A stretch of 64,000 nucleotides of DNA from Adineta vaga. Its lineage: Eukaryota > Animalia > Rotifera. A program made the position numbers and the translations under genes. Within the stretch, counting starts at the first letter, position 1. The number at the start of each line of letters is the position of its first letter. A model generated the notes under the pieces. That model worked only from the letters and a program-made list of their open reading frames with translations. It was not told the DNA's origin and ran no database searches. The DNA is taken from assembly GCA_021613535.1 (NCBI GenBank), contig CP075497.1:5518001-5582000 (forward strand), written 5' to 3'. Of the stretch, positions 32,895 to 39,379 are shown one piece after another.

Positions 32895-33994
32895 TTATGG
32901 ATTTATTTGGTTAATATGGTTTTCAGGACCTTTTCTACCCCAATTGTTGAAATAAATATTTACGAGGACATAGATCAATTGCTTTCGAAATCGTGCTGAT
33001 ACACAACAATAGATGTAGAATGCAACCTAAAAGTATATATAGTTTCTGAGATGTTATACGGTGTTTCTACCAACTTACCATGAAATTTCCATTAAAAATA
33101 ATTCGTGTTAATGCAATTATGAATTGATTTTCTGCACTATCAACTGCATTCGTAAATGTCACACTACTCGAATAAAAATGATTATAGATACTGTATGGTA
33201 AAGTTAAAAATACATCCACTACCACTTCGACCAACACCTATCATACATTCGAAAGAAAAAAGACATAAAACATTACCGTATTCAATCATCCTCAATAGTT
33301 CTACTCATACCATTTTTGTCAGTTGTTTATCTCGTTCTAATCGAACGATTGGTGTTTCTCGATTGTTGAAATGATGAACATTGATAAAAGCAAGAATACC
33401 AAAACAAACACGAATAATCAATGGTAAGAAGCCAAGTAGAACAGGAAAGAGAAATCGAGAATAGTAGATTGAAAAGCCTGTATTAGTGAAACCACATGTT
33501 GTTTGACCGGTACTTGATGATAATTCAAGATCTTGAAATAGGAGAACTGGAATACCATGTAAGAGGCATAGAATGAAAGCAACAATGATCAATCGACTAG
33601 CTGCTTTGACTGTGCATAAATGTCGCCATCGATGTTTGAGTAAAAGATATTGATCAATAGCTGCAAAACACATGCACGTGAATGTAGTGAGCATTGTCGT
33701 GGTAAGAGTGAATGTTCGAGCTTTGCAAATAAACGATGAAGTTTTGGTTGGATCGATGTTATAACCAGTGATAAGTATGCGAGAAAGTAGGCCGACAACA
33801 AGTTGAAAGATATTGACGATCGAAGCAGTTGTCATGTAGAAGGCAGCTGAAGTTTGTCGAAATGTTTTGAGTGAAGTGAAGATGATGATGTTGAGAATAT
33901 TGCCGATAACACCAGTAATGAAGACAAAAAAGCCACCATAGATATTACTGTTATTAGTAGCAAGTTGAAATGAATTAATAATAGTAGCTGACAT
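32895..33994 (-). CDS. Orphan class-A GPCR, copy 2 (intact; 3 exons)
   Basis: Same 7TM motifs as copy 1; open frame through exon 2 (...SAENQFIIALTRIIFNGNFM) and exon 3 (VAFYIYCCVSARFRKQ...INP*). Confidence 0.88.
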
Positions 33995-35100
33995 TATTAT
34001 AGAAGGATGATTGCAGTAGATATGCAACTATCTTCTGTGCTTTTATAACGTTATTGTTAAATGACGTCTAGTAATTAAATATTTATTAGTCAGCTTGTTC
34101 AGGCAGCTATGGAGATTTTCTTTTCAGGTTCCGATTTTCATAACAACCAAGATTCTCGAAGATAGCTTTAGAACTTTATCTGCTCATACATTTGAGATAA
34201 TAAAATCTGAAACTTTGATTATTATACTGCCTTAGATGAAATGACTTTTATATATGGTATCATACGGATAGGATATTAAGCTTTGTTCATTGCTTTTCAT
34301 TTTATAACGTTGACACGAAACAGGGTTAGTCGTTTTAGAATTTCAAAATTTCTTCGTTAACGGATGTCATTTTCAGTTTTGTTTGCTATACAACTCAGAT
34401 CATTGTTTGAAACAAATCATTCATTGGTTTTACTGAAACATATATATGCAGAAACTTGATTGATGACATTTTTTTCGAATACGATATGTAAGCTTTTTCT
34501 TAATCTTGTCGCTTACAATTCTATTATAATATTATTTCATGGATTGAATGTCACCGACAATAAAGATTTTTTTTTTCTACTTTTCTTTTAATTCATATTT
34601 TATGAAATAGTTTCAGCGTTCTACTCAAACTCATTACACATCATTACTTTATTTCTATCTTGCATGTCATTTAACGAAGTTATACTAGAGCGCTAGTGGC
34701 GCTAAAACCAATATGATTCGTAGAAAACGTATATTTTGATGGAGGTATTGGCTCACTTCAGTCAAACAGGTAGAGCATGTTGACAATCAATATAGCTTGT
34801 TTTCTTTTCCTTTATTAACATTTATTTGTCAAAAAAATAGAATAATCTTCCAACATATATTATATTAAACTTCAAACAAACTTTTTTACCTTTTCCTACG
34901 TTTAAATTGTCAATGTTGGTATTTATCTATATTAAATGGCACAAGCGAGAATAATGTTGATGAACAACCTCATTTTAAAGGTTTTTATTTGATGATTATG
35001 TCGGTGGAATGTTTATTAGATAGTAAATTTATGAAAAAAAATAAGCAAAACTCATAGTTAGTCAATTAGATAATTGTAGATTATTTTTATTTACAAGAAA

Positions 35101-35964
35101 ATGACATCTTCAACAACTACAGGACGATCTGCTCGTAGAGGTGGTGAACGAAAATCCAAATCGGCTCGTGCTGGTAGATTACACTATAGATCATTATGAA
35201 TCACCTTTGTCTAATATTTATTTCTAGGTGTACTTTTCTCGGTTCCACGTTTTCATCGTTATATTAAAAAATCAACACCAAAAAGTCGTGTAACAATGAG
35301 TGCTGCGGTTTATACTGCTGCTGTGGTTTGTAGACTTGTTAAATTTATGACAATTCCAGTAGTTAATCGAAAATTTTTCTTGCATCACAGATCGAATATC
35401 TAACCGCTGAAGTACTTGAATTATCTGGCAATGCCGCGAAAGATCATAAAAAACAACGTATTAATGCACGACATATATTTTTGGCTGTTAGCATTGATGA
35501 AGAACTTAAAAAGGTAAAAGTACATACGTTCTTATGATTAAAATCATTCATATTTTTTTCATTGTCATTAGCTTCTTCATGGCGTAACAATTCCACAGGG
35601 TAAATAAACATTGAGAAAATTTGAAATAAAACATTTTTTTGCATATATAATTAGGTGGTGTCTTACCTCATATAAATCCATTTTTATTCAAGAATAAATC
35701 TAGTAGTGATGATGATAGTCAAAATGCTCAAAAGGTAAGAGCTATCTACTTTATTATTTCGAAATATGAAATCATTTTCTCGACGTATCTTTCTAGAAGA
35801 AACCATCTGTTTTAAAAAGTACATCAACAGTTCGTGCACCTTCGGTTCTAACTACAAAAGCTTCTTCAACAGCTGCTGGAAGTAATAAAGCAAGTTTAAC
35901 ATCATCGGCAAGTTTAAAAAAAACAGCTTCTGTAAATGGCGGAGCTGGTACAAGTTCAGCATAA
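35101..35964 (+). CDS. Intron-containing histone H2A variant, macroH2A-like histone fold with Ser/Thr/Lys/Ala-rich tail, no macro domain (~189 aa; exons 35101-35173, 35228-35325, 35391-35513, 35572-35599, 35655-35734, 35797-35964)
   Basis: Spliced translation: ...[100 protein letters not shown]...; all introns GT-AG and phase-consistent; missed by the ORF track. Confidence 0.92.
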
Positions 35965-36443
35965 AATTTCAATACAATATAGAACAAATGTTTGATCATT
36001 ACATTTGTTTTTCTTTCCCGGAAAAAAAATGTCCTACTTTATCTGTTGTTAAGTGCATGTGCTTGTTTTCTGTGATTAATTTATTCGTAGATTTTAGAAT
36101 ATATATTTTTCATACGAAAAGGAAAAACAAGTTTTTGTTTTCACATTAATTCTAAGTTCTTATTCATGAAATCTTGGTGAATTTGCTTTCCAATACTTAT
36201 ATTCTTTATTTTATGTTTAGCATTATTTTATCTTAAATAATATGTTAATGTTTGTTTCTAGTTTCATTATTTAACTTCATTGTAGTATTTTAATCTGCTG
36301 ATTTCTTTTCTTTGTTCGTATTTATGTAGAAATTAAAATAAATTACGAAAGTAAAGATTCATAGATGAATATTTGTCTATTGTTAGCTATTCAATTAGCA
36401 TAACTCCAACTTGGCGCATTTATTCTTTGTGTTTACTCCTATT

Positions 36444-39379
36444 ATGGTCATTGCATATACTACAGTTGAATTAGCACAAATAAAAAAACTGCTACATGCA
36501 GTGCAAACATCTAATTATGATCAAGTACGACGCATCTGTCAAAAGGGTGTTTATGGAATTGTGAATTCTAATGATCCAACCGATGGTAGTCAGATAGAAT
36601 TATGAAAAATTTTAAAAAAATATCATCATGCTTATCAATCGTAGGTGAAACACCATTATTAATTGCGGTGAAAAGAAATGATGAAATGATGATACAATTT
36701 CTTCTTGATCTTGGTGCACATCCAGATAGAACTGATTTTAAAGTATTAGATGATAGATTTGAATTTTCTGCGAAGATTCTTAGCAGTTTAGTTAAAACAG
36801 ATAGTAATTAATTAAACGTTTCTCGGATTTTTAAGGGTCGAACACCATTAATGCGCGCTGCTGAACATGGCTTTATCGAAGCTGTTCAAACATTACTGAA
36901 TGCTAATGCGAAAACAAATATACGGGATCTCGAAGGAAAAGGTATTGTCAAATAAAAATGATTTTGAGACAAGAAACTTGCCAAGTTTTGTTTTCGTTGC
37001 ATACAGATGTTCTCTTTGCTTGTTTATCTGATGATACATATCGACAGCAAGAATGTTTTTCGATTATTATGTCTAGACAAATGCCGGATATCAATGAACT
37101 AACTAAAACAGGAAAACCATTGTTAATAGCTGCTTGTGAAAAAGGAATAGCTACAGAAAAAATCTGTTTGATGTTAATTGAACGTGGTGTTAATATTAAT
37201 ACTATTGAAAAGGTAATCGAAAATTTTAAACCGTTTTAACGATTGATAATTATGTTCACTTGTTTAGACGACTGGTAGAACGGCTTTACATGCAGCTTGT
37301 GCATCTGGTTCAATCAAAATCGTACGTGAACTCTTACGACGAAAAGTGAATGTTAATGCTTGCGACAATCAGCAACAAACACCTGCTCATGCTGCAATCA
37401 CTTCAAAAATATTCGAAGTACGAATATTCTATTGAGCAAAAACTCGTTATTTATACAGATACTTTCAATGATGTAGCTTTTACCGATTTTATCAGCTTAC
37501 AATGCACGTTTTGATCTAGCCGATCAATCACTAAATACTTCAGTTCATCTTGCTGCTAGATTAAATCAAGGTAAAGCAATTAAATTCATGGTTCAACGTG
37601 GTGGTACAACTCGAACGAAAAATGCCGAAAATCAACTACCGATGAAAATTGCTAAATTATATAAAAATAAAGATGCAAAGAAAATATTCATTTAGTAGAA
37701 AAGAAACATTACAATCGAAAGATATTGTCTTCAAAATCAAATCCTGATCGTGATTATAAAATTCACTTCTACGATTGGTTACAAGAACAATCAGATCGTC
37801 TTTTACGTCAATTTCATCAAGTAGAAAATCCCACAACTCATCACATTACATCTAATGATTTCAAAAAGATTATCGCTGAAGAAGGTTTTACGCAGATTAC
37901 TTCAGATGATCTCAATGATTTGATTGTTCGTCATGAAACGAATCCAAATGAAATCGATTATCGAACATTTCTATCTGGAAAATTGTTTATTGAAAAACCA
38001 TTTGTTCTGCAAGCCTTTGTTGAAAAGAATAAGAAAAAGAAAAAAAGGAAGAAAACAAAAAAACAAGTAGCTATTCCAATTGCAATACGCGATGAAGGAC
38101 CTCGAACATCAAAAGGCAAACCACCATTAGTTTACGTAAAAAAACATCAGTTCATTACTGATCAGAATCGATTTAGCCGTGATAAAATCCCTAAACATTT
38201 TATCAATGATGATTCAATATATTATATCGATCAAATTCATCCTCAATATGTACATATTAGTAATGCTGGTAGGTTATCTTCATCATTCTTATTAATACAA
38301 TGTATTCTACTCTATTTCATCGTAGTTTATCGCGGTGATCTACATACACTTCTCGATGCATTCAAATCGGGTAATGAGAAAATTGATTTTTCGTATTTTA
38401 ACTATTCTTTTAATTTCCAGGAGTGCCAGTAGACATTCGAGATAAATTCTATAAAACTCCTTTGATGATGGCTGCTGCCAATGGTGATGTAGAAACAACA
38501 AGATTTCTTCTTCAATCTGGGTATGAATCGAAAGACATAGAATAATCTCGTTTTAAGTTCGTACATATCTAGTGCCAATGTACATCTTGAAGATCAATTT
38601 AAATGGACAGCACTTCATCATGCTGCTCATTCAGGTCAATTAGGTGTTGTACGAGCATTAGTTGATGCTGGTGCTAGAATTAATCATGAATCAATTACAT
38701 TAGCTACACCGCTGAGTCGTGCAATTGAAAGCTCAGCACTTGATGTAGTCAATTATCTTTTACAAAAACGTGCAAATGTACGACATGAAAATCTCACACG
38801 TATGTATGCTCATCTTAATAGATTATAGTTTTATTTCGAAATATGTCAAATGTAGAACGAAATTTACTCGATTTGGCAACAGATTTTGCATCACCACAAG
38901 TATTCAATCTTGTACGAACAGCATATGAAGGAAAAGGAAATAAAAAGAATAATCAACAATTCAAAGTCCGTCGTAAATCAAACACAAATACAAAGAAAAA
39001 CAAGAAAGTTGAATTGGTAGATAAAACTAGTTTAGGAGAACGAATATCGAAAACTAACTGAATCTATTATTTATAGTTATCGACTTCAATCAAACCAGTT
39101 AAAATCGAAGCACCATTACCTCGACGAGGTTCATTAATTTTTGCAGAAGAGCAAATGAAATCTTCAAATGATGTATTTGAATCTATTACGTATCATCCAT
39201 TGGCAAAATGGACAGATCAACCAACGACTAGAGAATTATTGGATAAAAAAATCAATTTAAGAAATCAATTTACCTCAAATATCGATTTTCCGGATTATAA
39301 ACGACCACTATTTACTAATGCTGAAATGAAATTAGAACATTTGAAAACGTCAACGACTCGTTCAAATTCAAAACCTTGA
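36444..39379 (+). CDS. ANKEF1: Ankyrin repeat and EF-hand domain-containing protein 1, multi-exon
   Basis: N-terminus VELAQIKKLLHAV...KGVYGIVN; ankyrin repeats (GETPLLIA, GRTPLMRAAE, GRTALHAAC, KTPLMMAA, WTALHHAAHSG); FYDWLQE; EF-hand-like EIDYRTFLSGK; basic KKKKK run; FSRDKIPKHFINDDS. Confidence 0.87.

Follow-up and report, generated by a model that had tools for sequence, protein, structure and literature searches.

MacroH2A is defined by an H2A fold fused to a macro domain, and the share of its biology that belongs to each of these parts is debated. The locus described here, in the bdelloid rotifer Adineta vaga, encodes an H2A whose fold resembles that of macroH2A and whose coding sequence ends without a macro domain. 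The question that it raises is what such a protein is: a macroH2A that has lost its macro domain, as an earlier note on this DNA had claimed, an offshoot of canonical H2A that has come to resemble macroH2A, one of the bdelloid H2A variants already described, or a fragment of a larger gene. We consider the most probable answer, by a reasonable though not a wide measure, to be that the gene is a macro-less paralogue derived from macroH2A, and that the family to which it belongs arose by duplication of macroH2A in the syndermatan ancestor, with loss of the macro domain. The window, as the term is used below, is the whole stretch of 64,000 nucleotides that was analysed; the gene lies on contig C6 of the genome assembly, which comprises 100.8 Mb in six contigs.

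The gene occupies window positions 35101–35964, corresponding to C6:5,553,101–5,553,964. Reading of the sequence and piecewise translation identified a six-exon gene on the forward strand that encodes a 189-residue H2A variant, with the following features:

Exon 1, 35101–35173, + strand: ATG and N-terminal tail; 24 residues, then the first base of the Gly25 codon, followed by a phase 1 intron.
Exon 2, 35228–35325, + strand: alpha-N, alpha-1 and L1 loop; (G) and 32 residues; best PDB match macroH2A.1.
Exon 3, 35391–35513, + strand: alpha-2, L2, alpha-3 and the acidic-patch residues; Pfam Histone; ends in SIDEELKK at the phase-0 intron shared with macroH2A.
Exon 4, 35572–35599, + strand: 28 nt; LLHGVTIPQ, then the first base of a Gly codon.
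Exon 5, 35655–35734, + strand: docking domain (Pfam Histone_H2A_C), first, acidic part of the tail, and SQ at residue 129 (internal); (G) and 26 residues.
Exon 6, 35797–35964, + strand: 55 tail residues (KKPSVLK...GAGTSSA), then TAA; rich in S, T, A and K; no Pfam match.
Poly(A) signals ATTAAA/AATAAA, 36332–36342, + strand: at 36332 and 36337, 368–373 nt past the stop codon.

All five introns are of the GT..AG type and are 54–65 nt long, against a published range for bdelloid introns of 52–76 nt (PMC2642717). The coding sequence of 570 nt translates to 189 residues and a TAA stop, giving a protein of 19.97 kDa with a pI of 10.6. Exactly the same six exons were obtained when an independent orthologue (P0012) was used to guide a spliced alignment, which confirms the exon count, the approximate length and the stop at 35964 proposed in the earlier note; the sequence elements listed there (AGVLF, FSVPR, RYIKK..PK.R, IFLAV, LLHGVTI and SSSDDDS) are likewise all found in the protein. 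Pfam identifies an H2A fold with its docking domain (Histone and Histone_H2A_C), and the protein was aligned over residues 17–120. For these and the following analyses the window exons were searched singly, the full-length searches used the orthologues P0012 and P0159 and an alignment (A1), and joined exons served only for the alignments, tree building, profile scores and dN/dS estimates.

The canonical histone stem-loop had been noted as lacking, and this was borne out: the Rfam Histone3 model (RF00032) gave no match between 34800 and 36600 even at E ≤ 10, nor at the second copy of the gene on contig C3, while the same scan was positive at two other histone loci of the genome (L005 and L006). 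With five introns, an AATAAA signal and no stem-loop, the window gene is not of the replication-dependent histone type. Its upstream neighbour, on the opposite strand, is an exon of a rhodopsin-family 7TM receptor (33305–34027, −), and downstream on the same strand lies an ankyrin-repeat gene (36411–37239, +), which starts 480 nt past the histone gene.

The copy on contig C3 is an ohnologue of the window gene in which exons 1–5 have the same lengths, and its protein is identical to the NCBI entry 'hypothetical protein I4U23_014045 [Adineta vaga]' (P0159). The two copies differ by a dS of about 0.9, with dN/dS of 0.039 in the fold, 0.62 in the C-terminal tail and 0.57 in the N-terminal tail. 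Both copies are intact, and the fold is under strong purifying selection.

Evidence for expression comes from two sources. Uninterrupted coding sequences of orthologues, 189 and 191 residues long, are present on RNA-type contigs from JGI (963 nt) and Logan (978 nt), and both contigs are colinear with the spliced mRNA of the window gene at 80–82% identity. Their 3′ UTRs are 351–358 nt long and contain no macro domain, and one of them ends just past an AATAAA. Within A. vaga, a fraction of 0.46–0.47 of the sampled 31-mers of 35101–35964 is present in eight small assemblies; the share expected if only words internal to exons were present is 392/834 = 0.470. Two large A. vaga runs contain about 0.8 of the sampled 31-mers and are DNA-like. 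The agreement of the small assemblies with the exon-only expectation is indirect evidence for a spliced A. vaga mRNA. Judged by the spliced orthologous mRNAs together with these 31-mer shares, the window gene is real and expressed.

A word search with P0012 as query found orthologues of 184–198 residues in Rotaria (five species or strains), Adineta vaga, A. steineri, A. ricciae and Didymodactylos carnosus, with scores above 200 bits; the matches that follow them reach about 145 bits or less. Database entries give these proteins no name beyond 'Histone H2A' or 'unnamed protein product'. Two further, more distant members emerged from an exhaustive search with exon 3. One (P0022) is a macro-less protein of 190 residues with a 78-residue tail from the acanthocephalan Pomphorhynchus laevis, on contig WNNJ02003516 of GCA_012934845 (the species assignment of this assembly, WNNJ00000000, is given in PMC8351084 and PMC7310846); the other (P0178), of 231 residues, comes from an RNA-type Logan contig. 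The P. laevis gene (L028:6001–6573) consists of a single exon with 45% GC, compared with five introns in the bdelloid genes, a state that could reflect either intron loss or a retrocopy. Among the bdelloid members the fold is nearly invariant, and 18 family members show no variation in the acidic patch (E59, E64, E67 and D93–E95, numbered as in the window protein) or in the docking motif GGVLP.

On these searches the family is present in all sampled bdelloid rotifers and in one acanthocephalan, and as far as sampled it is confined to Syndermata. The P. laevis orthologue indicates that it is not specific to bdelloids. The earlier note had suggested a role in chromatin compaction during desiccation; because an acanthocephalan endoparasite, which does not desiccate, carries an orthologue, a desiccation-specific role is weakened and is not favoured here. 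We note that two H2A genes have been listed for the monogonont Brachionus calyciflorus (PMC3701536, Table 3), namely H2A10, which is intronless and has its best match in ferret, and H2A11, which has three introns and a long tail and its best match in fish. In monogononts these two may correspond to the macro-less family and to macroH2A.

A search of the A. vaga genome with exon 3 found 13 H2A places, each of which was modelled:

Window gene (C6) and its ohnologue (C3): macro-less H2A of putative macroH2A type.
L003–L006 and L010: five genes with a canonical-type fold (the H2Abd-type set).
L011 (C2, about 7,125,200–7,126,000, −) and L012 (C5, about 11,128,000–11,128,700, +): two H2A.Z genes, RIHRHLKSRTTSHGRV... 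and GNASKDLKVKRI...
L008 (C6, about 11,508,000) and L013 (C6, about 11,414,600): two very divergent, intron-rich H2As (AGVVFPV..RHIFLAI and SGLVFSV..).
L007 (C5, about 10,950,300–10,952,700, −) and L009 (C2, about 7,390,800–7,392,300, +): full-length macroH2A ohnologues.

The full-length macroH2A genes were found through Pfam Macro matches located 0.8 kb downstream of H2A exons. They have eight exons and encode about 357–361 residues, comprising the H2A fold, linker and macro domain. One of the two is probably FUN_007384, a 'core histone macro' gene (PF00125 and PF01661) that is reported to respond to radiation and desiccation by induction (PMC10809525). A full-length macroH2A ohnologue had been proposed as something to look for; full-length macroH2A is present, as the pair on C5 and C2. 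Its presence modifies the description of the window gene as a macroH2A that lost its macro domain: the protein does lack the domain, while the genome keeps two full-length macroH2A genes, so that the macro-less gene coexists with true macroH2A as an extra paralogue.

The two H2A.Z genes fall inside the H2A.Z clade (100/99, starred) and score 191 bits on the H2A.Z profile, whereas bdelloids have been stated to lack H2A.Z (PMC2642717, PMC3701536). The two divergent genes on C6 form long branches of uncertain placement; they were considered as further macro-less macroH2A derivatives and dropped, their introns being 4–6 nt off the macroH2A positions.

Whether the fold of the window protein is of macroH2A type was addressed with trees, profiles, motifs and introns. 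Maximum likelihood trees were built from 104 fold columns under LG+C20. In the tree of 63 rows the family forms a clade (100/99, starred), which is joined by the P. laevis protein and P0178 (100/96, starred); its sister group is the pair of A. vaga macroH2A genes (92/18), and the branch uniting it with all macroH2A has support of 63/93. This last branch rose to 97/96 (starred) in a second tree, from which long rows were taken out and to which 19 canonical and H2A.Z rows were added, and to 99/91 (starred) in a tree without the A. vaga macroH2A rows. The family thus lies on the macroH2A side, apart from canonical, H2Abd-type and H2A.Z sequences, in all three trees, and the branch is starred in two. 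Forcing the family together with A. vaga macroH2A gave a likelihood 5.4 units above that of the free search, so that the best topology has the two as sisters, and the full-length A. vaga macroH2A is the nearest neighbour of the macro-less family in the best-likelihood tree. The signal in 104 columns is modest. The family and A. vaga macroH2A are both long branches, and mutual attraction between them is possible.

The profile comparisons point the same way. An HMM of the macroH2A fold was made from 19 sequences, none of them from rotifers, and was compared with HMMs of canonical H2A and H2A.Z. Every family member scores higher with the macroH2A than with the canonical HMM, by 3–13 bits; the window protein scores 152.2 bits with macroH2A, 140.8 with canonical H2A and 122 with H2A.Z. 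The H2Abd-type genes prefer the canonical over the macroH2A profile by 26–44 bits, a comparison that is partly circular since those genes are in the canonical profile, and the A. vaga H2A.Z genes favour the H2A.Z profile by about 50 bits. An H2A.Z identity for the window gene was rejected on its scores (152 bits with macroH2A, 122 with H2A.Z) and on the separate clustering of the true H2A.Z genes. With the macroH2A profile the macro-less family, at 146–153 bits, outscores the folds of the genuine A. vaga macroH2A genes (121–143 bits), which have diverged further from the macroH2A consensus. In the PDB, macroH2A.1 is the best match of exon 2 (22.9 bits; H2A.Z reaches 19.9 and canonical H2A 16.3 at most), and macroH2A.1 chains are also best for exon 3 by a slight margin.

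At the level of motifs the window protein shares SKSARAGVLF with macroH2A, identical in the proteins of Saccoglossus, Priapulus, Acanthaster and Owenia, and has RHIFLA where macroH2A has RHILLA; across the family, RH(I/V)FLA places a hydrophobic residue at the position of the canonical H2A glutamine. It differs from macroH2A in having FSVPR in place of FPVGR. The likeness of RYIKK..PK.R to macroH2A, pointed out in the earlier note, holds for the vertebrate proteins, whereas invertebrate macroH2As have T-HH-R there.

The introns provide a further comparison. Two fold introns are common to the macroH2A genes of the annelid Capitella, the hemichordate Saccoglossus and both A. vaga loci: the first is of phase 1 and lies in the Ala codon of (T/V)AE(I/L)LEL, and the second, 107 nt further on, is of phase 0 and follows EELx(Q/K). 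Lottia was uninformative here, as its macroH2A record has hardly any introns. The second intron is present at exactly this position in the window gene and its ohnologue, between EELKK and LLHG in phase 0, and is absent from the H2Abd-type and H2A.Z genes of the same genome. The first is not found in the family, which instead has a phase-0 intron 16 nt upstream; the two remaining fold introns, both of phase 1, at RAG-V and at IPQ-G-GV, are the family's own. One exact match among four fold introns would be expected by chance in about 3% of cases under a uniform model. The intron comparison proposed in the earlier note thus gave one exact match and one position that is not shared, and as a link to macroH2A we regard the intron between EELKK and LLHG as helpful, not decisive. 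General features of gene organisation also resemble those of macroH2A, which likewise has introns, is of polyadenylated type, lacks the stem-loop and has a long C-terminal extension.

This extension is the part of the protein that differs most from macroH2A. The C-terminal tail is 69 residues long past the FLFK position, in line with the 65–70 residues estimated previously. It consists to 52% of S, T and A, with about 26 Ser/Thr, and contains 10 K/R and 3 D for a net charge of +7; a Pfam search with the tail exon gave no match. An SQ(E/D)-phi H2A.X motif is absent from the C-terminus (which reads ...GTSSA), as had been stated; the protein has a single SQ, located internally at residue 129, on which the earlier note is to be corrected. 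The AlphaFold monomer model of the C3 paralogue has no secondary structure in the tail, where pLDDT is mostly below 50; this model is of low confidence overall (mean pLDDT 54) and was used only for the three helices of the fold and the structureless tail.

The tails of the orthologues share a common plan, with FLFK-x-K-S-x-S-D-D/E, often SQ, then ...SRSNTA..., (A/P)RAPSAL(T/A)TK and ...(L/T)KK(T/A)AS..., and an end in -SSA. They are 50–78 residues long and 47–62% S/T/A, with net charges of +4 to +7. The acidic SQ site is kept in 10 of 19 sequences and in none outside the bdelloids. By contrast, the macroH2A linker is strongly lysine-rich, and no lysine-rich, H1-like linker follows the fold in the window protein. 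The tail exon showed no similarity to the linker exon of A. vaga macroH2A (BLASTP E=65), and the proposal that the macroH2A linker was retained as the tail is without support from sequence.

These comparisons have to be weighed against the alternative that the family is an independent, fast-evolving H2A variant that arose from canonical H2A in Syndermata, with its likeness to macroH2A (AGVLF, the hydrophobic residue where RHLQLA has its Q, and the L1 loop) acquired by convergence. Trees in which the family was forced to group with the H2Abd-type genes were 18.6–21.7 log-likelihood units worse, yet the AU test did not reject such a clade (p=0.085 and 0.20), and the preference of the trees for macroH2A over H2Abd and canonical H2A, a choice that had been left to phylogeny, is to be read with this in mind. 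Eight columns discriminate strictly between macroH2A and canonical H2A, and they are tied: the family agrees with macroH2A at two, with canonical H2A at two and with neither at four. Only one of the two macroH2A introns is common to the family, its tail is unlike the macroH2A linker, no trace of a former macro domain was detected, and long-tailed H2As have evolved repeatedly in bdelloids (PMC2642717, PMC3380720). Set against this are the placement in all three trees, the preference of all members for the macroH2A profile where the H2Abd-type genes prefer the canonical one (with the circularity noted above), and an exact intron match with macroH2A where the canonical-type genes of the same genome have none. 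We regard a canonical origin as a serious but distinctly less probable explanation, and a derivation from macroH2A as the better reading of the fold.

It is very improbable that the window gene is simply a known variant (H2Abd, H2Abd1 or H2Abd2) met again in a new assembly. The H2Abd variants occur in the same organisms and resemble it in that their C-terminal tail is extended, their genes have introns and the H2A.X motif is lacking, and H2Abd2 also in its poly(A) signal and lack of a stem-loop (PMC2642717). Their folds are of canonical type (AGLQF, RHLQLAI, LLPKK), they have 1–3 introns and tails of 28–43 residues, and they have been reported to be bdelloid-specific; the window gene has a fold of apparent macroH2A type, five introns, a mass of 20 kDa, a 69-residue tail and FLFKNK for LLPKK, and its family also occurs in Acanthocephala. 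The values published for A. vaga H2Abd, H2Abd1 and H2Abd2, respectively 1, 1 and 3 introns and tails of 28, 34–37 and 40 residues past LLPKK, with masses of 16.2–17 kDa (PMC2642717, Table S1), refute the identification, and the five canonical-fold genes L003–L006 and L010 are separate genes that cluster elsewhere. The papers searched on this point (PMC2642717, PMC3380720, PMC3701536, PMC10809525) contain only the H2Abd, H2Abd1 and H2Abd2 classes and no macro-less, macroH2A-like H2A. The family is an undescribed one, and forms a fourth long-tailed H2A class of bdelloids.

The absence of the macro domain itself was examined in several ways. MacroH2A is made up of PF00125, PF16211 and PF01661, and the window protein, which ends 69 residues past its fold, has neither a recognisable basic linker nor the macro domain. 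Of the 27 PF01661 matches across the genome, none lies on C6 or near the C3 copy. Searches by tblastn with three macro domains gave no match in window positions 1–38029 and 38067–64000, in L002, or up to 6 kb from the gene of P. laevis, while the positive-control locus was matched with E values of 1e-33 to 1e-96. That the annotation is truncated and a downstream macro exon is spliced on, or that the gene is a decaying fragment of a macroH2A pseudogene, would fit with the A. vaga macroH2A genes being alike at the 5′ end and sharing the intron between EELxK and LL (they also form an ohnologue pair, at about 10.951 Mb on C5 and 7.391 Mb on C2, and keep a linker and a five-exon macro domain), and is made highly unlikely by these searches, by orthologous mRNAs whose coding sequence ends at the same point and is followed by about 350 nt of UTR, by the ankyrin gene that begins 480 nt downstream, and by a fold dN/dS of 0.039 over a dS of 0.9 in a family kept across bdelloid families and an acanthocephalan. 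Neither of the two outcomes that had been named as refuting the original proposal was thus seen: there is no grouping with H2Abd or canonical H2A in the trees, subject to the AU result, and no macro exon in the searched window. Because the macro domain, a defining feature of macroH2A, is absent, we do not file the window gene as a macroH2A; it is best assigned to a syndermatan family of H2A variants that is related to macroH2A and lacks the macro domain.

On the preferred reading, a derivation from macroH2A, the history and mode of action of the family can be outlined as follows. MacroH2A would have been duplicated in the ancestor of Syndermata (bdelloids and Acanthocephala), and one copy would have dropped its macro domain and come to end in a disordered, mildly basic tail of roughly 65–80 residues, rich in S, T and A. 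From what is established for H2A variants, the protein would be expected to dimerise with H2B and to enter nucleosomes outside S phase; the invariant acidic patch and the GGVLP docking motif support this predicted pairing and entry. The tree, taken together with work on macroH2A, suggests that the fold may confer macroH2A-like properties on these nucleosomes. In vitro, entry/exit DNA and remodellers are controlled by the macroH2A fold and linker and not by the macro domain (PMC12873964), and the macroH2A linker promotes the self-association of nucleosome arrays (PMC3129167).

A role can also be envisaged for the tail. In H2A the C-terminal extension emerges from the particle close to the DNA entry/exit site, and from there the tail of the macro-less protein could bind linker DNA. 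More speculatively, it might be regulated by phosphorylation at some of its approximately 26 Ser/Thr residues, including the acidic SQ. Bdelloids have been reported to be without H2A.X, and their set of H2As has been linked to their DNA-repair abilities. One might go further and imagine that Syndermata have a pair of macroH2A-type proteins with separated functions, in which the macro-less fold and tail look after nucleosome and entry/exit architecture constitutively, the full-length macroH2A is a stress-induced specialist, and the SQ at residue 129 is a DNA-damage phosphorylation mark of bdelloids; we regard this as an improbable scheme.

The macro-less variant, the full-length macroH2A genes and the H2A.Z genes together mean that the published inventory of bdelloid H2As is incomplete. 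A fold of putative macroH2A type that is held under strong selection without a macro domain, in bdelloids and in an acanthocephalan, would constitute a natural experiment on the respective roles of the fold and the macro domain.
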